A stretch of 64,000 nt of DNA from positions 744,001 through 808,000 of the forward strand of contig CM119371.1 of the NCBI GenBank assembly GCA_051294905.1, given 5' to 3'. The notes beneath the pieces are model-generated. The model made no database searches, was not told where the DNA came from, and saw only the letters and a program-made list of their open reading frames with translations. Shown one piece after another: positions 17,302 through 54,772 of this stretch (positions within the stretch are counted from its first letter, which is position 1; each line of letters opens with the position of its first letter). Both the position numbers and the translations under genes were made by a program. This stretch comes from Botryllus schlosseri (Eukaryota).

Positions 17302-18883
17302 CCGTGGATATACTCAGCTATCGCAGCTATCGCAGCTCCCGTAGCTATCGCAGCTATCACAGTGTGGAAATACTCAGCTATCACAGCTATCGCAGCTATC
17401 ACCAAATTTCGCAGACAGAGAGGTCATTTAAAGGTCACGTATCGTTTAGGGCGCAGCTATCAGCGCTGGAGCTTGTCTGGGTTGAATTAGTGCGCAGCTA
17501 TCAGATCCGGAGCACGTCTGAGTTGAAATAGTGCGCAGCTATCAGCTCCGGAGCACGTCCTGGTTGAAATAGTGCGCAGCTATCAGATCCGGAGCAAGTC
17601 TGAGTTGAAATAGTGCGCAGCTATCAGCTCCGGAGCACGTCCGGGTTGAAATAGTGCGCAGCTATCAGATCCGGAGCAAGTCTGAGTTGAAATAGTGCGC
17701 AGCTATCAGCTCCAGAGCACGTCCAGGTTGAAATAGTGCGCAGCTATCAGATCCGGAGCAAGTCTGAGATGAAATAGTGCGCAGCTATCACATCCGGAGC
17801 AAGTCGGAGTGGAAATAGAGCGCAGCTATCAGCTCTGGAGCACGTCCGGGTTGAAATAGTGCGCAGCTATCACTACTGTGACCCAGCTATCGCAGCTATC
17901 ACCAAAAATTGCAGACATACAGGTCATTTAAAGGTCACGTATCGTTTAGGGCGCAGCTATCAGCGCTGGAGCTTGTCTGGGTTGAATTAATGCGCAGCTA
18001 TCAGCTCCAGAGCACGTCTGAGTTGAAATAGTGCGCAGCTATCAGATCTGGAGCACGTCTGAGTTGAAATAGTGCGCAGCTATCAGGTCTGGAGCACGTC
18101 CTGGTGGAAATAGTGCGCAGCTATCAGCTCCGGAGCACGTCTGAGTTGAAATATTGCGCAGCTATCAGATCTGGAGCACGTCTGAGTTGAAATTGTGCGC
18201 AGCTATCAGATCTGGAGCACGTCCTGGTGGAAATAGTGCGCAGCTATCAGCTCCGGAGCATGTCTGGGTTGAAATAGTGCGCAGCTATCAGCTCCGGAGC
18301 ATGTCTGAGTTGAAATAGTGCGCAGCTATCAGCTCCAGAGCACGTCTGAGTTGAAATAGTGCGCAGCTATCAGATCTGGAGCACGTCCTGGTGGAAATAG
18401 TGCGCAGCTATCAGATCCGGAGCAAGTCTGAGCTGAAATAGTGCGCAGCTATCACATCCGGAGCAAGTCGGAGTGGAAATAGTGCGCAGCTATCAGCTCC
18501 GGAGCACGTCCGGGTTGAAATAGTGCGCAGCTATCAGCTCCGGAGCATGTCTGGGTTGAAATAGTGCGCAGCTATCAGCTCCGGAGCACGTCTGGGTTGA
18601 AATAGTGCGCAGCTATCAGCTCCGGAGCATGTCTGGGTTGAAATAGTGCGCAGCGAGCACCTCCGGAGCATGTCTGAGTTGAAATAGTGCGCAGCTATCA
18701 GATCCGGAGCAAGTCTGAGTTGAAATAGTGCGCAGTTATCGGTTCCGGAGCACGTCCGGGTTGAAATAGTGCGCAGCTATCAGATCCGGAGCAGGTCTGA
18801 GTTGAAATAGTGCGCAGCTATCGGCTCCGGAGCACGTCCTGGTTGAAATAATGCGCAGCTATCAGCTCAGGAGCACTTCCGGA
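17302..18883 (+). repeat. 41-bp satellite array with a shared AGCTATC-rich head (head partly duplicated at about 17870-17990)
   Basis: Unit GTGCGCAGCTATCAGCTCCGGAGCACGTCCTGGTTGAAATA (period 17531 to 17572 = 41), about 30 copies. Confidence 0.95.
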
Positions 18884-19351
18884 TTCAGATTCATTCATTA
18901 CACGGCATGCAAGGACTATCTTCGTGATTTTCAGTGTACGGGCGGTGAACAGATATTCTGACATCCACACGGGATCAAAAAAAAAATCGTTACTTTGTAT
19001 TAAAAGCTCTGCTTACGAATAATTATGCAGCTGTAAATACATATTTGTTTTAATATTGACTAACACCTGTGCGATTCCGTGGATGTAGCGTAGGCTTTCC
19101 CTACTGACGGCTCTGCCTATCATAGATATTCACTGATCTGATATCGGACGTGTGCGACTGCAGGTACAGTATATGGAGGCCTATTATTCACTACACGGGC
19201 CTTATACGTATCTAATTAATATAATGCACACTCCAAAGACAATATTTCGATACTGGTGCACCAGAAGAAGGGTGTGTTACTTTGATTGGTATGTCATGAA
19301 TAGAATATAGCTCAGAGACCTACTCGCCTGGTAACTTTATCAAAATACTAT

Positions 19352-22447: not shown

Positions 22448-23961
22448 CAGTGTTGAGATCAAGTCACTGCCTTTGAGTCATTTCGAGTCATTGCACATTT
22501 TGACTCGAGTCGAGTCAAGTCAAGTCACAAATCAAGTCAAATTGAATTTTCGAAGTATGAGAGATGATTCAAAGTCAGTACATTTTGCTAGCTGTGTGAC
22601 AGACAGATTAATTTGCTATTTATCTTGAATCAAATAACCAATATGAAGTTAAATATACATGCAAAAGGCGTTGTATCGCTTACGCACACGTAGAACTGCT
22701 AATAAAACACGTGATAAATATAGAAACGAATACAGAGAGAGGTTGAAACAAATTTATATGGTACAATAGCCTACACCACCCATCTACACATCCGTGAGAA
22801 TATAAACAAACAGACTATATCGTTGTTCTATTTCAATCATACAAAAGGGTAAGTAAAGGTGAGCACTGCGCAACTTGAGCATTGAGCCGTCTAAGAAACA
22901 GAGACACATTGCTATTTGATCTACTACTACGGCTACGTAAGCTGTGATAGCTTTGTTTGCGGTCCATGGAATCATACACCCACCTTGGCCTAGGCTAGAG
23001 GTGTCAAACATACGACCCGCGGGCCCCATCCAGCCCGCCAGACGATTTCATCTCGCCCACGAAGCAATTTTGAGTAGATTGAAAAATGTGAGTATTATTA
23101 TCAAGTACATTTCTGGAAAATGTTGGTGTTTTTAGTAAGAAATACTTGTATTAAATAATCCCTCAAGACATCAGTTGTAGAGTATGTTCATAGGCCACAT
23201 TATAACTATAACCGACAACGGTGTTGTGGTTTCAATCCAGTCAGCATTAGAAACAAATAGCTGGCATTGACACCCAATTACGAGGAGGCATACTGATCAC
23301 AGTATTTTATGGAAAAAAAATGACCAAAAACTAGATATTCACAGAAGTGAAATGCTTATCGCGATTTAAGAATAATTAAATAAATTTCAACGTGCGCATT
23401 TACAGTTGAATCTGCTGTATTCCTCACACGCAGGGTTGATGCCAGTACCATTAAAACTTGATGACTTGAAATTGACACGTAAATTTTGCTCCGAGTCATG
23501 ACTCGAGTCACAATTTTCTGATGACTCGACTTGACTCAAGTCATTATCTCAAAATACGGAAATGACTCGACTCGACTCGAGTCTATATGTGTAATGACTC
23601 GACTTGGACTCGAGTCATTGCACATGACTCGAACCAAGTCGTATGACTCAACACTCAGACGGCCAAGACCTACATTTCATTGCAATTTCGAAGAATAGTA
23701 AATTAACCACCCTATTGTTACTGCATGATACTTCAAAATGCGACCAGAAACTATTAAAAGTGAGGAAAATTAGTATATTATAAATGCGAACCATTCGATA
23801 TCACCAAACATACTTATAGAAAGTGGGTAAAGTGGGTTTAACAAGATTTTAAATGGAAAATGAGCAGTCAACACAATCACTTGGACTTGGACTCGAGTCA
23901 TAATGCCATGACTCGGACTCGAACCTCCGCTCGATGACTTGGACTCGGGCTTGACTCGGTG
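22448..23961. mobile_element. GACTCGAGTC-rich non-autonomous element inserted in the tail of the minus-strand satellite
   Basis: Dense GACTCGA/TCGAGTC motifs at both ends, the same family as 27268-27850 and 62685-63235; satellite units flank it on both sides (22365-22447 and 23962 onward). Confidence 0.65.
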
Positions 23962-25174
23962 GCTGCGCACTATTTCAACTCAGACTTGCTCCGGATCTGA
24001 TAGTTGCGCACTATTTCAACCTGGACGTGCTCCGGATCTGATAGCTGCGCACTATTTGCATCTGGACGTGCTCCAGAGATGATAGCTGCGCACTATTTCA
24101 ACCTGGACGTGCTCCGGATATGATAGCTGCGCACTATTTCAACCCGGACGTGCTCTGGAGCTGATAGCTGCGCACTATTTCCACTCAGACTTGTTCCGGA
24201 TGTGATAGCTGCGCATTTTTTCAACTCAGACTTGCTCCGGATCTGATAGCTGCACACTAATTCAACCAGGACGTGCTCCGGAGCTGATAGCTGCGCACTA
24301 TTTCAACCCGGGCATGCTCCGAATCTGATAGCTGCGCACTATTTCAACCTGGACGTGCTCCGGATATGATAGCTGCGCACTATTTCAACCCGGACGTGCT
24401 CCGGAGCCGATAGCTGCGCACTATTTCAACTCAGACTTGCTCCGGATCTGATAGCTGCGCACTATTTCAACCTGGACGTGCTCCGGATATGATAGCTGCG
24501 CACTATTTCAACCCGGACGTGCTCCGGAGCTGATAGCTGCGCACTATTTCAACTCAGACTTGCTCCGGATCTGATAGCTGCGCACTATTTCAACTCCGAC
24601 TTGCTCCGGATGTGATAGCTGCGCACTATTTCAGCTCAGACTTACTCCGGATCTGATAGCTGCGCACTATTTCAACCCAGACTTGCTCCAGATCTGATAG
24701 CTGCGCACTATTTCCACCAGGACGTGCTCCGGATCTGATAGCTGCGCACTATTTCAACCTGGACGTGCTCCGGATATGATAGCTGCGCACTATCTCAACC
24801 CGGACGTGCTCCGGAGCTGATAGCTGCGCACTATTTTAACTCAGACTTGCTCAGGATCTGATAGCTGCGCACTATTTCAACCAGGACGTGCTCCGGAGCT
24901 GATAGCTGCGCACTATTTCAACCCTGGCATGCTCCGAATCTGATAGCTGCGCACTATTTCAACTCAGAAGTGCTCCGGATCTGATAGCTGCGCACTAATT
25001 CAACCCAGACAAGCTCCAGCGCTGATAGCTGCGCCCTAAACGATACGTGACCTTTAAATGACCTCTCTGTCTGCGAAATTTGGTGATAGCTGCGATAGCT
25101 GTGATAGCTGAGTATATCCACACTGTGATAGCTGCGATAGCTGCGGGAGCTGCGATAGCTGAGTATATCCACGG
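23962..25174 (-). repeat. Second 41-bp satellite array with the same head, inverted relative to 17302-18883
   Basis: Reverse-complement units (about 25) and a near-identical head CCGTGGATATACTCAGCTATC...GGTCATTTAAAGGTCACGTATCG. Confidence 0.95.
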
Positions 25175-46892: not shown

Positions 46893-47277
46893 TGTCCTTG
46901 TTGACAACGTGATCAGTTCTGCACAAGAACTGGTACAACTCGTCGGCGAGTTGGACTGGGCTATTCACTGCGAGTATGCCTGACTTCGTAGTATTAATAA
47001 CTGACTGCCAAGTCCAGACACAATAGATCCCCGATGTGTGTATTACAGAATGACGTACGATGAATCCAGACTATAGCATAACGTTAAAAATTACGTTGGC
47101 AAATACTCTAAAATATGAGATCACAATAATGACAGTTAGAATCAAGAACAACAAAGGACCCTGTTTACAATGCGGCGACTATGGAAAGACTGAGCATGTG
47201 CTACTACACTTGCCCTCATGCGGCGAGGCGGTCATGTGTGACGTTATCATAGATACAGTCTGAAAACCAACTTGACA
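46893..47277 (-). repeat. 3' LTR of the BEL element
   Basis: 385 bp, 7 mismatches versus the 5' LTR. Confidence 0.97.
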
Positions 47278-47516: not shown

Positions 47517-49067
47517 TTATTCCAGTTCAAGACGACACAATTTGTGGATGTCGCGGCTATAAGTACCAATGGGCGTACGTACGGTAACTTTACGCACCAA
47601 TCCGTGCTGATCAGGGAAAACCTCCTCAACAATAGCCTTGGGCCATTTGCCGCGGGCCGCATTTGAGTCGGACATGAGAACTACATCTCCTACTTTGAAG
47701 TTAGGTGTTTGGTCAAGCCACTTGGAGCGAGATTGCAACAACGGTAGGTACTCTTTTAACCACCTTTCCCAAAAGAGATCGAGTTTGCGCTGGACACAAC
47801 GCCAATTTTTGGAATAGTCATCTGCTTTACAGAATTTGTGAGTTGGGACAGAGGGGATAAGCCTTCCGAGAATTATTGAATTGGGAGTCAGACACGGTAA
47901 ATCGCCTGTGTCATCGGAAAGTGGCGTCAATGACCTATCGTTTAAAAAACGGGCGACTCCATAAAACAGTGCAGATAATGTGTTATCGTGAAATATTGCA
48001 TTGTGATCCAGAGCATAAAGAACACGTTTGCACAAGGCTACCACTCGCTCGACGCAGCCATTGAACTGCGGGGCGAGACTGGGTGAAAAGTGCCATTGGA
48101 TGCCTCTGTCGGCTAGGGACGAGGCCACTTGCTTTGAGTTTAGATTATCGACAGCCTTCGCAAGTTCTTTTTGCGCACCAACAAAGGTTGTAGCGTTGTC
48201 GCTGAAAATGTGGGCTGGCCTGCCCCGGATGTCACAGAATTTGAAAAATGCCATCAGAAAGGCTGATGTTTCTAGGGATTTGACCACTTCTAAGTGGACA
48301 GCACGAGTACATAGGAAGGTGAATACGCAGCCGTAGCGCTTGAGCTCGGTACGATTGCGTCTGCAGGACAACGGACCAAAATAATCAACCATTGTGTAAT
48401 TGAAAACATTTTTGTGTGGCGTGAGGCGGTAATGCGGGAGGTCGGCCATGTATTGGGAGCCTAGAGTCGCTTGGCGACATTGACAGAATATACATTTGTT
48501 GAGCACTTTGCGAATGGAAGTCTGGCCTCTCATGATCCAGAATTTTTCTCGAATTAGGGACAGAACTTGTAGCGTGCCACAATGGCCATTCGTGACATGG
48601 TAGTGGCGGATGATCAAGCGAGTGACATGGTGCCCGGAAGGCAATATCATAGGATTTTTTGCATCCTCCGGGAACTGAGAGCGATTTAGTCGGCCTTTTA
48701 CACGCATAACCCCATTTGATACGTACGGTATCAAGTTAGCCAAAGAATTGGGAACAAGCTTTTTGTTAACGAGAAACTGATCGGTGGCGCGTGCGTTGTC
48801 ATGAAACGGTTTGGTGGCACCAGGGAACGAATCGCTTTGCACGAGCCTATTAATTTCTCTTGTCGCTTCCTCCAGCTCATCGACGGTGAGGAAACCGGTG
48901 CGCGGTGCAAGCAGCGGGTCGCCAGACGGGCCTTTTGTCTTCTTGCGCAGCACAGAACGTAGTCGTAAGATCCAGGCGGTCGAGCGGACGAGTTTCGTGA
49001 AAGAGGAGAAACTGTTCAGGTAGTCGTTAAGCGATCTCGTTGTAGGTGTTACGTCTATCGAAAACAC
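47517..49067 (-). CDS. BEL pol C-terminal part: integrase
   Basis: HCGT...CIFC zinc motif, MADLPxxR, DYFGP, AVHLE, SDNATTF, NGCVER, WLKEYL and a C-terminal VGDVVL..GLVRKVTV. In frame with the RT ORF across a TAG at 49134-49136 (GPDF*LQPADSWP). Confidence 0.95.
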   Translation of the reverse strand: MFSIDVTPTTRSLNDYLNSFSSFTKLVRSTAWILRLRSVLRKKTKGPSGDPLLAPRTGFLTVDELEEATREINRLVQSDSFPGATKPFHDNARATDQFLVNKKLVPNSLANLIPYVSNGVMRVKGRLNRSQFPEDAKNPMILPSGHHVTRLIIRHYHVTNGHCGTLQVLSLIREKFWIMRGQTSIRKVLNKCIFCQCRQATLGSQYMADLPHYRLTPHKNVFNYTMVDYFGPLSCRRNRTELKRYGCVFTFLCTRAVHLEVVKSLETSAFLMAFFKFCDIRGRPAHIFSDNATTFVGAQKELAKAVDNLNSKQVASSLADRGIQWHFSPSLAPQFNGCVERVVALCKRVLYALDHNAIFHDNTLSALFYGVARFLNDRSLTPLSDDTGDLPCLTPNSIILGRLIPSVPTHKFCKADDYSKNWRCVQRKLDLFWERWLKEYLPLLQSRSKWLDQTPNFKVGDVVLMSDSNAARGKWPKAIVEEVFPDQHGLVRKVTVRTPIGTYSRDIHKLCRLELE

Positions 49068-49133
49068 TGGTTCGATTTTTGTTGCGGAACGGTGAGCTTT
49101 GTTGTGTCCAGGCCATGAGTCTGCAGGCTGGAG

Positions 49134-51350
49134 CTAGAAGTCGGGCCCCTCGAACCACATTCTTGCGAGCTGCCAACGATGGGGCATTACGCCACGTGAG
49201 CCAGTATCTGCTGGATTGTTGGCGGAGGCAACATGCTGCCATTGCTCGACTCGCGACAGAGCACGAATCTTGAGTAGTCGTTGATGTACAAAAGTTTCGA
49301 ATCGGGCCGAAGTGCTCCTGATGCTTTGGAGCACTGAGGTACTGTCGGTCCAGTAGTGAACAGTGTCGATATTGTAGTCAACATCTTTTATAACGTCTCG
49401 GGCGAGCTTGATGAAGGTTACGGCAGCCGTGAGTTCCAGTCTGGGAATGCTGGGAGCATTCTGCGGCACGACCCTGGAGATGCCTCTGACAAATGATATG
49501 TGGACGTTGCCGTCAGAGTCCTCGAAACGAAAATAGAAACAGGCTGCATAGCCGGATTTACTAGCATCGGCAAAAGCGTGTAGTTGAATGTTCACGGGCG
49601 AGAATCCTGGTGGTTTATAACACCTGGGAAATGAAAGCTTTTCGAGTTCCGGAAGCGAATTGACCCATTTGGTCCACTTCGCACTGAAACTCTCGTCGAT
49701 CGGTGTGTCCCAAGCTAGGTCGAGACGAGAAATTTCCTGTAGAAGTGCCCTTGCTGGTAACAGGAACGGGCTCAGGTATCCGAAAGGAGTATAGATCTGA
49801 GCGATTTGACTTGCGATGCCTCTGCGAGTGAAAGGCTTAGGTACGATGTTAGTGCGTGCACGGAGTGTGTCTTCATTCATGTTCCAGATAACACCCAACG
49901 TTCGCTCGTTATCTGAATTTGCGAAGTCGAGATCAACGAGATTGGAAGTGCGGGCTTCTCCGGGAATCCGGGACATAATCGCAGAACTACCGCTGGCAAA
50001 TTTCGTCAGATTGAATCCGTAATGTGCGAAAAGCGTTCGCAGTTCTTCGACGATCTTGATAGAGGTCTCGAGATCATCTGATGAATGGAGTATGTCATCG
50101 ACATACGTGTTCCGCAGGATACAGTCGAGAGTAGGCTTGGCGGCGTTCGTGCCGTTTTGCAAGACTATTTTTCGTAGGCAGAATTGAGCAACACATGGAG
50201 AGGACGTGCTTCCGAATACGTGAGATGTCATCTGGTAATCGGTTGCTCTACCGTCTAGTTTGCTGTCAGCGAACCAGAGGAATCGCAAGCTATCCGCGTC
50301 TTCTGGATAGGTTTGTATTCTTGAGAACATCTGAGCGAGGTCTGCAACCCAAGGGTGCCTGCCCATACGGAAACGGCATAGGACCCCGATGAGAGAAGAA
50401 TTCACGTCAGGGCCACTGAGCAGTTGGCTATTTAGACTGGTACGGGAGAATTTGCGACTTGCGTCGAAGACTATTCGCATCTTTTGTTGCCGGGTGTGAA
50501 AATGGACGAGGTAGAACGTTCGCTCAGAGGAAGGCAGCAATTCTGGCGGAACAACTTGAGCGTACCCTCGAGATAGATACTCGTCGATTTTTTCCTTGTA
50601 CTTTCGAAAGAACTCGGGATCTTTCGCGAATTTCAAGCGCTGGGATTCGAGCGATTTCTCAGCGGCTGCTCTGTTGTACGGGAGCTTCACGTCTTTCGTC
50701 CGCCACGGAAGGCCTACCTGGAAACGACCGTTCAGTATGCGTGCCGTATTTTTCATCAAGGCGAGCGCGCGCTCATCGTCGATCGAATGTTGAGATTCGT
50801 AGGGGTCAACCCAAATATCCGAAAAATCAGCGTTACAGCTAGAACACAATGGCAATGTACGCGAATCGAGATGCTTAGAAATGCGTGTATCAACGTGTAC
50901 GAAATTAATATCGATAAAATTGGCACTATTAGGCTCGGAAACGGAGCTCGCCATGGTATAATCTGAACCCCCAAGACACCAACCAAAGACCGAGAGCTCG
51001 GCCCCCGGCAAGCCGTTCTGAGGCTTGATAACTTCAGTGCTGGGGTAGCGCATTAGGAAATCTTTCCCAATGACCAAGTCGACATCATTTGTGTCGGCAA
51101 CCGGTATATTAATGTGGCTGAGGTGAGTGCATTTAGAAATGGTATCAACATTTGGAGAGTGATTGAACACATCAGGAAAGTGGGGAGAGGCAAGCACATC
51201 AGGTATATCAATCACCGTGCTCTGATAAAGGCCTCGGACGGAAAGAGCCACCACTTCTACCTCCCCCTCGGCGGTGCCCGTAGCTGTCTTGGTTCGACAA
51301 GCAATACGATCACCATGTAGATTCAATTTTTGCGCAGGCGCTCTGTGCAC
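49134..51350 (-). CDS. BEL pol: protease C-terminal part, reverse transcriptase and RNase H
   Basis: RIVFDAS, ADLAQMF, FGSTSSP, YVDD; HAFADAS, IPRLEL, WTDS, NNPAD. Confidence 0.95.
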   Translation of the reverse strand: MHRAPAQKLNLHGDRIACRTKTATGTAEGEVEVVALSVRGLYQSTVIDIPDVLASPHFPDVFNHSPNVDTISKCTHLSHINIPVADTNDVDLVIGKDFLMRYPSTEVIKPQNGLPGAELSVFGWCLGGSDYTMASSVSEPNSANFIDINFVHVDTRISKHLDSRTLPLCSSCNADFSDIWVDPYESQHSIDDERALALMKNTARILNGRFQVGLPWRTKDVKLPYNRAAAEKSLESQRLKFAKDPEFFRKYKEKIDEYLSRGYAQVVPPELLPSSERTFYLVHFHTRQQKMRIVFDASRKFSRTSLNSQLLSGPDVNSSLIGVLCRFRMGRHPWVADLAQMFSRIQTYPEDADSLRFLWFADSKLDGRATDYQMTSHVFGSTSSPCVAQFCLRKIVLQNGTNAAKPTLDCILRNTYVDDILHSSDDLETSIKIVEELRTLFAHYGFNLTKFASGSSAIMSRIPGEARTSNLVDLDFANSDNERTLGVIWNMNEDTLRARTNIVPKPFTRRGIASQIAQIYTPFGYLSPFLLPARALLQEISRLDLAWDTPIDESFSAKWTKWVNSLPELEKLSFPRCYKPPGFSPVNIQLHAFADASKSGYAACFYFRFEDSDGNVHISFVRGISRVVPQNAPSIPRLELTAAVTFIKLARDVIKDVDYNIDTVHYWTDSTSVLQSIRSTSARFETFVHQRLLKIRALSRVEQWQHVASANNPADTGSRGVMPHRWQLARMWFEGPDF

Positions 51351-52228
51351 AGTATAGAGCCACAGCCTGGATCTAGGAATGCGTTAGAGATCACTCTAAC
51401 TTTTGAATCGGGGGAGGTGATTATGACCGGTAGGACGGCTAAGCGCACAGGATTCACTTTCCCGTTTAGCGAGGATGACATCGTGTTGACGTCAGCGAAT
51501 ATTTTATTTTGGAAACCCCAGTGGAGTAGGGTGTGATGCAATGAGTTGCAGCCGTCGATGTAGCACTTGCATTCTGACTTACATGTACGGGGTTCATGCC
51601 CGTAATTCAGGCAGGTGGTGCAGATCCGTTTTTCTTCCACGCACTTTTTACGCTCATCTGGGGTCTTCTGATGGAAGACGTCGCATTTGTAGATCTGGTG
51701 TGTGCCACTGCAGAGATGACAGCGCGGTGGCGGCGGTCTTTGCGAATTGCTTTGTCGACGTTCACTGGAGGCACCGACGGGGCGCTCGACGGTTGTTGCG
51801 TTCACTTTCACTTGCGTGGTGCATCTTGCGGCTCTGGCGTTCGGCATGTTGGCTACGAGTCTTCCCATGCGAGTTCTCCCGATATCAGCTGCACACTGCA
51901 CACACAACGAAGTCGACGAAGTCGTCAAAGGTTGGCTCGATGCCGTTTTTCATCGTATCATTGTACTTGTTGGTGAATCTTGTCATAAAGTTTTTGGGGA
52001 AGCGCTTTACTATTTTGTCAAAAACGCCTGTCGCGTTCACTTGCGCTTTTGCTCTAAGTTGTGCAAGGACGTACCTGGCCGTTCTGAGCTCGTCAGATAC
52101 TTTTTGCAGCGCCCTACTGTCGCTAGGTTCAACATGATTATCTTAAGTTAAATTATCAATGAATGCATCAATAACGTAGTTTTCGCGGCCAAATTTATCG
52201 TACAGAATTTTGCGGGCATGTGAGTAGC
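51323..52228 (-). pseudogene. BEL gag C-terminal part (capsid-like, three zinc knuckles) and protease N-terminus, disrupted
   Basis: GYSHARKILYDKFG (frameshift at about 52230), TAA at 52143-52145, frameshift at about 51905, CHLCSGTHQIYKC / CTTCLNYGHEPRTC / CYIDGCNSLHHTLLH, FLDPGC catalytic motif, 1-nt deletion at about 51335. Confidence 0.9.
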
Positions 52229-54352
52229 CTACGCTTCCTCGTCATGCTGATTAGCACGACAACCAGAAAGTGAAGACTCCGCATCACCAGTACAAAACGA
52301 GATCAATCTATTTAGTTTGGTCCGGGCTGAGTGTCTCTCACTAGGATGTGCATTTACAGGCTCGAAAGCGGAATCAAATTCATCGATAAAACGGTAGTAA
52401 TCTCGCGGGCTGCCATCAAAACTTGAGATTGTTATGGTATGTAGGTCCATCCCACGTTTCATGGAGCCTAGCATACTGTTCAATGACATGGCACAAGGAT
52501 CGTTAAGCGAGTTCACCGAACCGTGCGGTGGAATAGAAGCGACATAATCCCCATGCGGGCGATAATAACTAGAACCGGTTTGGTCGCGGGAATGAGGACT
52601 GTGCCAAGTGTGCTCATATGGCGCGTAATGTCTATCGGCGCCTGGATCGCGATAGCGAGAGGTGAGATCAGAGTGCCCATGGGGCGCGTAATGACTATAG
52701 TCGGCTTGACCGTGGTAATGAGAGGTTGTATGGGTGTGCGTGTATGGCACGGTATGACTATGGGCGGTTTGATCGCCATAGCGAGAGGTTGGGTCGGTGT
52801 GCGCGTACGACACGGTATGACTATCGGCGGTTACATCGCGATAACGAGAGTTTGGATCGGCGTGCCCATATGGCGCGTTATGACTATCGGCGGTTCGATC
52901 GCGATAACGAGAGGTTGGATCGGCGTGTGCGTACGGCACGGTATGACTATCGGCGGTTACATCGCGATAACGAGAGTTTGGATCGGCGTGCCCATATGGC
53001 GCGTTATGACTATCGGCGGTTCGATCGCGATAACGAGAGGTTGGATCGGCGTGTGCGTACGACACGGTATGACTATCGGCGGTTACATCGCGATAACGAG
53101 AGTTTGGATCGGCGTGCCCATATGGCGCGTTATGACTATCGGCGGTTCGATCGCGATAACGAGAGGTTGGATCGGCGTGTGCGTACGGCACGGTATGACT
53201 ATCGGCGGTTTGATCGCGATAACTAGAGGTTGGATCGGCGTGAGCGTACGGCATGGTATGACTATCGGCGGTTTGATCGCGATAACGAGAGGTTGGATCG
53301 GCGTGCGCGTATGGCACAGTATGACTATCAGCGGATTGATCACGATAGCGAGAGATGGGATCGTTCTGCCACTGTGGAGTACTTTGCGAATACGAGGGAG
53401 TTGCTGGCTCCGAGCGCGAATTAAAGGGCCGGGAATGTGTGCCTATCTCTCGAGCCTGGCTACCAAGATCATCAGCTGCGAAACTGACGGACAGACGACT
53501 GCTACGGTTAGGGGTTTGTCTTAGATCATGCGCGACTTGTGTACTAGCCAATGCCGTCGACTGATGAGTGTCTGTCAACGATAGGGTTACCGCCGGCTCC
53601 GTTGCGAGCCTCTGCCCAGCACTACTGGCTGTGGCAGATGCAGGCGTTCCCCAGGTAACGAAACTCGATGTTTGCGTAGTGAGCAAATCTAAAGGTTCAG
53701 TACTCACAGCACCATTTTCTCCTTCGAGGACAAGTGATCCGACGGAACCGCCGCCGGATTCTTCTTCGGCAATTTCCAAGTTTGAAGTAAATTCGAGAAT
53801 CTCCAGATTTTCTTCAAGTTCTTCTGCGATGCTAGCTTCTTTGGCTTTTTCTGTAGCTCTTCTTGCTTCTTGTCTGAGTTTTATCTTTTCGATTGACAGT
53901 CTAGCATCGCGTGCTGCGGATGATTTTTTGGAAGATGTGACAGAATGAGGACTCGCAGGTATCTCCGAGGTTCGAGGCTTAATGTAGTCAAGGGTGACAT
54001 CGGAAGAAGAGTTTACGTTTTCTTTTCGGTAATCTTGGAAGGCACGACCAGCCTGACGCTGACCCTGTACGACTGTCAACAACAGTCCTTGTATCTGCAA
54101 GACGCTCTCCTGTAGAGCAGGATTCATTTTAGCTTTTTCGATCAATCCGTAGAAGTCGTCAATGAGTTTACTGCATAGTTCATCTAGTTCGCAGTTACAC
54201 TTGATAGCGTTTTCAGTAGACGACGTATTCTGTATGGCGGAGGAGAAAGCGTCTTTAGCTTTCTCGTAGGCAACTCTGGAACTTTCCAGGACTGCGTCGA
54301 TATGCTGCTTGTTCAACTCTTGTTGACCAACGGCTTGTAAGGTTCGATCCAT
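52229..54352 (-). CDS. BEL gag N-terminal part with 12 x 21-aa repeats
   Basis: First ATG at 54352 (the ORF track begins at a GTG at 54370); coiled-coil region, repeat block, then ISSFDGSPRDYYRFIDEF..KLNRLISFCTGDA (DUF1759-like). Confidence 0.9.
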   Translation of the reverse strand: MDRTLQAVGQQELNKQHIDAVLESSRVAYEKAKDAFSSAIQNTSSTENAIKCNCELDELCSKLIDDFYGLIEKAKMNPALQESVLQIQGLLLTVVQGQRQAGRAFQDYRKENVNSSSDVTLDYIKPRTSEIPASPHSVTSSKKSSAARDARLSIEKIKLRQEARRATEKAKEASIAEELEENLEILEFTSNLEIAEEESGGGSVGSLVLEGENGAVSTEPLDLLTTQTSSFVTWGTPASATASSAGQRLATEPAVTLSLTDTHQSTALASTQVAHDLRQTPNRSSRLSVSFAADDLGSQAREIGTHSRPFNSRSEPATPSYSQSTPQWQNDPISRYRDQSADSHTVPYAHADPTSRYRDQTADSHTMPYAHADPTSSYRDQTADSHTVPYAHADPTSRYRDRTADSHNAPYGHADPNSRYRDVTADSHTVSYAHADPTSRYRDRTADSHNAPYGHADPNSRYRDVTADSHTVPYAHADPTSRYRDRTADSHNAPYGHADPNSRYRDVTADSHTVSYAHTDPTSRYGDQTAHSHTVPYTHTHTTSHYHGQADYSHYAPHGHSDLTSRYRDPGADRHYAPYEHTWHSPHSRDQTGSSYYRPHGDYVASIPPHGSVNSLNDPCAMSLNSMLGSMKRGMDLHTITISSFDGSPRDYYRFIDEFDSAFEPVNAHPSERHSARTKLNRLISFCTGDAESSLSGCRANQHDEEA
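52609..53365 (-). repeat. 63-bp in-frame tandem repeat in gag (ADPTSRYRDRTADSHNAPYGH-type), central units in a 126-bp A/B alternation
   Basis: Read directly from the translation; units 4-9 alternate ...RDRT..NAPYGH / ...RDVT..TV(S/P)YAH. Confidence 0.95.
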
Positions 54353-54371: not shown

Positions 54372-54384
54372 CGTAATTTTTAAC
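54372..54384 (-). promoter_or_regulatory. Putative self-priming PBS (GTTAAAAATTACG), complementary to LTR segment 54578-54590
   Basis: Lies 3 nt from the end of the 5' LTR; no TGG tRNA-type PBS is present; perfect 13-nt reverse complement within the LTR. Confidence 0.7.
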
Positions 54385-54387
54385 TTT

Positions 54388-54772
54388 TGTCCTTGTTGAC
54401 AACGTGATCAATTCTGCACAAGAACTGGTACAACTCGTCGGCGAGTTGGACTGGAGTATTCGCTGCTAGTATGACTGACTTCGTAGTATTAATAACTGAC
54501 TGCCAAGCCCAGACACAATAGATCCCCGATGTGTGTATTACAGAATGACGTACGATGAATCCAGACTATAGCATAACGTTAAAAATTACGTTGGCAAATA
54601 CTCTAAAATATGAGATCACAATAATGACAGTTAGAATCAAGAACAACAAAGGACCCTGTTTACAATGCGGCGACTATGGAAAGACTGAGCATGTGCTACT
54701 ACACTTGCCCTCATGCGGCGAGGCGGTCATGTGTGACGTTATCATAGATACAGTCTGAAAACCAACTTGACA
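54388..54772 (-). repeat. 5' LTR of the BEL element
   Basis: 385 bp, TGTCAAG...CAAGGACA in element orientation. Confidence 0.97.

Follow-up and report, generated by a model that had tools for sequence, protein, structure and literature searches.

Self-priming of reverse transcription has been proven for the retrotransposon Tf1, the RNase H of the element itself making the cut (PMC7175516), and has been predicted for the Tcn1 (gypsy) and TAR (copia) lineages (PMC6317226). For the BEL/Pao superfamily, the ICTV profile of the Belpaoviridae describes priming by host tRNA, with the 3′ end of tRNA-Arg or tRNA-Gly being complementary to an 18-nt site (PMC8742986), and the primer site of Achilles, a BEL/Pao element of the olive fly, matches tRNA-Tyr (PMC4580426). 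The replication of BEL/Pao elements has been called 'poorly understood' (PMC8742986), and the large surveys of the superfamily never discuss priming (PMC3118150, PMC554778). In the literature searched, the coverage of which is incomplete, no proposal of self-priming for BEL/Pao was found. The sequence-only reading of the present locus had started from the same view of BEL/Pao elements as tRNA-primed, in agreement with the ICTV profile, and had proposed that the element described below may be primed by its own RNA.

The window, i.e. the whole 64-kb stretch of Botryllus schlosseri DNA that was analysed, carries on its minus strand a complete BEL/Pao element of 7,880 bp running from 54772 to 46893 (Table 1). 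The two LTRs have TG..CA termini and differ at 7 positions per 385 bp, and a 5-bp target duplication, GACAT, flanks the element (54777–54773 and 46892–46888); the copy is young. The Pfam domains detected, namely RVT_1 (reverse transcriptase), Peptidase_A17, Integrase_H2C2 and DUF5641, make up the BEL/Pao set, and in this pol domain set as well as in the LTR termini and the short target duplication the element resembles canonical members of the superfamily, from which it differs in having no TGG primer site. Phylogenetic membership in the Tf1/sushi group of Ty3/gypsy was considered and rejected on account of the Peptidase_A17 and DUF5641 domains and of the nearest proteins, all of which belong to BEL/Pao. 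The gag-like frame had no Pfam match, and homologue searches matched its repeat region only; a tandem array in this frame (52484–53413, minus strand) consists of about 14 units of 63 nt, each of which encodes a 21-residue repeat similar to ADPTSRYRDQTADSHTVPYAH. The window also contains a 41-nt tandem repeat in two arrays, with about 28 registered copies at 17343–18921 and about 25 at 23855–25138. At least 150 Peptidase_A17 matches were found in the genome, many of them within open frames of about 1,900–2,150 codons, so that BEL/Pao elements are both abundant and recently active there.

Table 1. Features of the BEL/Pao element, in coordinates of the window
Feature	Position	Strand	Remarks
5′ LTR	54388..54772	(-)	385 bp, TGTCAAG...GGACA; 98% identity with 3′ LTR
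Tentative RNA 5′ end	54604	(-)	14 nt upstream of LTR 13-mer; about 8 reads, weak
LTR 13-mer CGTAATTTTTAAC	54578..54590	(-)	LTR positions 183-195; proposed self-primer, 5′ copy of R
U5 hairpin CAACTCG-CCGA-CGAGTTG	54431..54448	(-)	about 45 nt upstream of primer site
Spacer AAA	54385..54387	(-)	3 nt, between LTR terminal CA (54388) and primer site
Primer-binding position GTTAAAAATTACG	54372..54384	(-)	exact reverse complement of LTR 13-mer
gag-like first open frame	52229..54352	(-)	707 codons, ATG at 54352
pol region	47517..51928	(-)	three open pieces: 51928-51323, 51350-49134, 49067-47517
Purine tract ACGGGGGCGGCCA	47290-47278	(-)	directly before 3′ LTR
LTR 13-mer, 3′ LTR copy	47083..47095	(-)	same sequence, exact match
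3′ LTR	46893..47277	(-)	385 bp; purine tract precedes, GACAT follows

Three nucleotides past the 5′ LTR, after the spacer AAA, the minus strand reads GTTAAAAATTACG (54384–54372), a stretch without TGG, and the exact reverse complement of this 13-mer lies in both LTRs (54590–54578 and 47095–47083); in both respects the sequence-only reading of the locus proved correct. Throughout the window, CGTAATTTTTAAC has three exact matches only, i.e. the two LTR copies on the minus strand and the inverted one at 54372–54384; the chance expectation is 0.18, and three matches were reached in 0 of 100 shuffles. In an internal control, the longest reverse-complement match to the LTR did not exceed 10 nt in any of the 7,031 internal 20-nt windows of the element, the corresponding value at the primer position being 13. 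From the 5′ LTR to the gag ATG there are 38 nt, without any TGG in the focal element or in the aligned copies; 22 of these nucleotides follow the primer site, where the sequence varies among subfamilies, and the space before the ATG is too short for another primer site. In other subfamilies TAA takes the place of AAA as the spacer, which has a length of 4–5 nt in distant copies.

Duplex energy did not single out this site, the GC-rich control windows beating the AU-rich pair; it is the AU-richness of the site that makes such statistics fail. A chance origin of the complementarity in AT-rich sequence has in its favour that AT-rich 13-mers are commoner than under uniform odds, and that 0.3% of the control windows equal the score of the focal element when mismatches and G:U pairs are tolerated. 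It is effectively excluded, however, by the counts of exact matches given above (0 of 100 shuffles and 0 of 7,031 windows) and by the conservation of the pair, its co-variation and its recurrence in other species.

The LTR 13-mer and the primer site are separated by about 190 nt of R-U5, which include the perfect hairpin that had been read from the sequence with the correct coordinates (Table 1). The 7-bp stem of this hairpin is unchanged in 12 of the 13 aligned copies, with CCGA, CCGT or CCGC as the loop. The R-U5 fold as a whole is not more stable than that of shuffled sequence (z = -0.48). When a consensus fold was calculated with RNAalifold, the program, unprompted, closed R-U5 with the 13-bp helix. 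In the alignment of this helix 99.2% of the cells pair, as against 31–44% when the partners are slid by 1–3 columns, and 88% of the columns within the helix are invariant as compared with 62% elsewhere. One pair of the helix is changed on both sides, in 4 of the 13 sequences, and the count-based co-variation score was equalled by 2 of 500 shuffles.

This arrangement is similar to that of Tf1 and Tf2 from Schizosaccharomyces pombe and of the Tf1/sushi group, which have no tRNA site and, beside the 5′ LTR, a primer site complementary to a short part of their own R (PMC7175516). As in Tf1, a U5 stem-loop is positioned between the paired segments, and the geometry is such that the paired stretch has to be cut at its 3′ end. 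Unlike Tf1, a Ty3/gypsy chromovirus, the focal element is a member of the BEL/Pao superfamily as judged from its Peptidase_A17 and DUF5641 domains; its paired stretch comprises 13 nt instead of 11 nt, and the duplex is AU-rich and strongly conserved in sequence. Similarly conserved hairpins and long-range pairings near the primer site are found in the U5-IR and U5-leader stems of retroviruses; there, however, the primer site stays free for the tRNA, whereas the pairing described here occupies the primer position itself.

A query of the genome with the LTR plus leader yielded 41 places with 73–100% identity, in 15 of which both the 5′ LTR and the leader were aligned. The LTR 13-mer is kept in about 58 LTR copies, either as an A form or as a B form. 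In the B form the LTR reads CGTATTTTTTAAC and the primer position GTTAAAAAATACG, a both-sided change that restores the pair: the LTR changes from CGTAA.. to CGTAT.. and the primer site from ..AATTACG to ..AAATACG, so that A:U is replaced by U:A. Genome-wide pattern counts gave 16 elements with both 13-mers, 4 of them A-A, 12 B-B and none mixed; the compensatory co-variation that had been suggested as a check is thus present, with zero discordant copies. The A/B switch represents essentially one evolutionary event inherited by many copies rather than a series of independent events. The limits of the complementarity are identical in A-form and B-form copies. In two decayed copies the only differences leave G:U wobble pairs, and in one further copy the T run of the LTR is shorter by 1 nt and the A run of the primer site is correspondingly shortened. 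Four distant copies have a very different R-U5 and spacers of 4–5 nt, yet both 13-mers are kept; at the place equivalent to that of the U5 hairpin, these four carry another stem, GCTCA-GCT-TGAGC. Copies with a normal TGG site or without the LTR complement had been named beforehand as evidence that would speak against self-priming; the related copies are without a TGG site and keep the pairing between LTR and primer site.

That the two 13-mers serve a protein as inverted binding sites in DNA, for instance as an AT-rich promoter or a TATA-like element together with its mirror, instead of being the strands of an RNA duplex, appears very improbable in view of these copies. The motif is indeed AT-rich and located in the promoter-proximal part of the LTR, and in two of the relatives from other species described below (L068 and L069) similar motifs lie between a TATA-like stretch and AATAAA. 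The preference of a host protein, however, would not switch in step at both sites between subfamilies, and the tolerance of G:U-type changes is consistent with pairing in RNA. Some primer would, moreover, still be needed at exactly this position, and the sharp limits of the complementarity coincide with the expected 3′ end of the primer.

Some further variants were seen among the copies in the genome. One copy (L019, G000 C12:18585318–18585674) has a partial internal duplication of R-U5, with 331 nt between the 13-mer and the primer site instead of about 190 nt, both being of the B form. The sequence CGTATTTTTTAGC, in which A is replaced by G at position 12, occurs in four LTR copies (G000, C10:2803295, C10:3373454, C10:3811606 and C1:6988435), and would still pair with a B-form site via G:U. 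A third variant, CGTGATTTTTAAC with GTTAAAAATCACG, had been guessed from look-alike matches and was absent when searched.

In other species, the identity of pol homologues does not exceed 45%. For eleven of them the surrounding DNA was examined, and usable LTR pairs were present in eight; L063, L065 and L067, without a usable LTR pair, are outside the comparison. In none of the eight relatives compared (L061, L062, L064, L066, L068, L069, L070 and L071) is the 5′ LTR followed by a tRNA site of the TGG type. Several of them start with GT(T/A) directly after ...ACA. The element from Styela clava, the sister of the focal element in the pol tree (support 99/95), has LTRs of 639 bp and the target duplication ATACT. 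It carries a different pair of 11-mers, ATTAGTTTTAT (LTR positions 410–420) and ATAAAACTAAT, the latter 5 nt after the LTR. The Styela motif is found at three places only in 23 kb, and no internal window of the element reaches an 11-nt complement; in the scoring that tolerates mismatches and G:U pairs, its score is equalled by 3.6% of the control windows.

The element from the Topomyia mosquito (L068), with identical LTRs, has in its LTR the 11-mer GTATTTTTTAA, which is nearly of the B form, and the inverted copy 2 nt after the LTR; AATAAA follows 24 nt downstream of the LTR motif. Its primer site, ATTAAAAAATACG (L068:6273–6285), shares 12 of 13 positions with the B form of the site at 54372–54384. 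Its LTR motif agrees with the B form at 12 of 13 positions as well. In the pol tree the Topomyia element is placed in a separate clade and is not the closest relative of the focal element; shared ancestry, constraint or transfer may account for the near-identity to the B form. Complements of only 8 nt, at +1 or +2 and not significant alone, were found in L069 and in the Eurosta fly element (L071). The L069 motif lies between a TATA-like stretch and AATAAA, and in the Eurosta element (L071:8190–8260) the complement to the primer position overlaps the AATAAA signal of the LTR. A self-complement, like a TGG site, is missing from the other four of the eight relatives (L062, L064, L066 and L070), and this lack of a complement speaks against self-priming.

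The LTR end marks the start of minus-strand synthesis, and the 3′ end of the primer must therefore fall within a few bases of 54388. The primer position has no complementarity to a tRNA 3′ end, as seen from the absence of TGG and from a search of the genome with the 15-mer complement, i.e. that of the 13-mer with two conserved flanking bases. This 15-mer complement has 20 copies in the 495-Mb genome, all of which are primer sites of this BEL/Pao group, so that no separate host RNA locus matches; a complementary host RNA, which had been named in advance as an argument against self-priming, was thus encountered nowhere outside the element group. A run of five or six T terminates Pol III transcription, which makes a nuclear tRNA with the 13-mer inside implausible. 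Furthermore, the existence of two forms of the primer site means that priming by the host would need two host RNAs. The 18-nt tRNA-complementary primer site of the ICTV description was not found in the focal element.

These results bear mainly on the principal rival of self-priming, according to which the stem formed by the 13-mer and the primer site is only regulatory or structural (masking, packaging, dimerisation or translation control) and the primer is a non-tRNA host RNA with the sequence of the 13-mer. Co-variation demonstrates pairing and not priming, and stems around the primer site are well established in retroviral leaders. The best argument for a host primer is the near-identity of the B-form and mosquito primer sites across pol clades, which looks like that of shared tRNA sites and resembles the conservation usually produced by a shared host primer; it also counts against self-priming as such. 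We nevertheless regard this alternative as unlikely, since the two host RNAs it needs would each have to be matched by the corresponding LTR, outside the elements no locus has the 15-mer complement, Pol III would be stopped by the T5/T6 run within the host RNA, and the Styela sister element has a different sequence pair.

The RNA data comprised one 3′-end single-cell run and one bulk run (X24) from a near relative, 95–99% alike. In the single-cell run, U3 and the 13-mer are covered about 200-fold by sense reads, which extend into the purine tract and thus derive from the 3′ LTR. Transcripts of the family are in the sense orientation, and both A-form and B-form 13-mers are expressed. In the bulk run, a depth of 6–10 was found over 54450–54604 and of 0 over 54625–54699; short inserts span about 54550–54604, and a strand-switch joint is located at 54604. 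This stop is not an effect of alignment, because upstream of 54604 single-cell reads of the same subfamily do align well. Over 54470–54560 the expressed copies differ from the copy in the window, and the reads are clipped there. The bulk data, about eight reads, suggest that about 14 nt precede the 13-mer at the 5′ end of the RNA, so that the 13-mer, although near this end, probably does not begin at base 1. The start at about 54590 that had been predicted from the sequence was therefore close by, the end suggested by these reads being upstream of it, near 54604; a start far from 54590, named in advance as an argument against self-priming, is not indicated. In Tf1 the paired stretch begins at base 1 of the mRNA, whereas the 13-mer of the focal element apparently lies about 14 nt inside the RNA, on the weak signal of these eight or so reads.

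Taken as a whole, the comparison makes it fairly probable that reverse transcription of the focal element is initiated by its own RNA, in a manner similar to Tf1, and not by a host tRNA. The proposal is based on the pairing, its position, its conservation and its co-variation, together with the lack of a tRNA-type site and of a host locus with the complement. The self-priming suggested in the sequence-only reading has in this way gained support: the pairing itself is well supported, and the use of the 13-mer as primer is deduced from its location together with the absence of an alternative. The full-length transcript would start in the 5′ LTR, at or slightly upstream of the 13-mer CGUAAUUUUUAAC, which would fold back over the approximately 190 nt of R-U5 and pair with GUUAAAAAUUACG three bases past the LTR, presumably either within one RNA or between two packaged RNAs. 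A putative cut following the final C of the 13-mer (the end of UUUUUAAC), made by an enzyme that is likewise inferred, would provide the 3′-OH from which the reverse transcriptase would extend through the spacer and U5. Such an extension would explain the position of the LTR end. The prediction of self-priming for Tcn1 and TAR was likewise made from sequence alone, i.e. from complementarity between LTR and primer site in the absence of a matching tRNA (PMC6317226; PMC7175516); those elements, from plants and fungi, belong to the other two superfamilies, whereas the present case concerns BEL/Pao and an animal.

Self-priming may also be widespread and old in a large part of BEL/Pao and not a quirk of one family, a possibility that we regard as somewhat less likely than not; it is raised by the focal element, the Styela element with its different pair, the Topomyia pair and the lack of a tRNA-type site in all eight relatives compared. 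If so, the conserved duplex of U run and A run might be a specific recognition signal for the RNase H of the element.

The initiation of reverse transcription is a defining step in the replication of retroelements. If the focal element is indeed self-primed, BEL/Pao would be the third superfamily with this mode of priming, which would then occur in all three superfamilies of LTR retrotransposons. This would bear on the idea of a hairpin- or self-primed ancestral LTR element (PMC3601003), and would explain why, for many BEL/Pao elements, annotation pipelines that search for tRNA sites are unsuccessful. The 13-bp RNA duplex and the predicted cut site offer a precisely defined target for testing. 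Should self-priming prove widespread in the superfamily, the textbook statement that these elements are tRNA-primed would be wrong for many Belpaoviridae.
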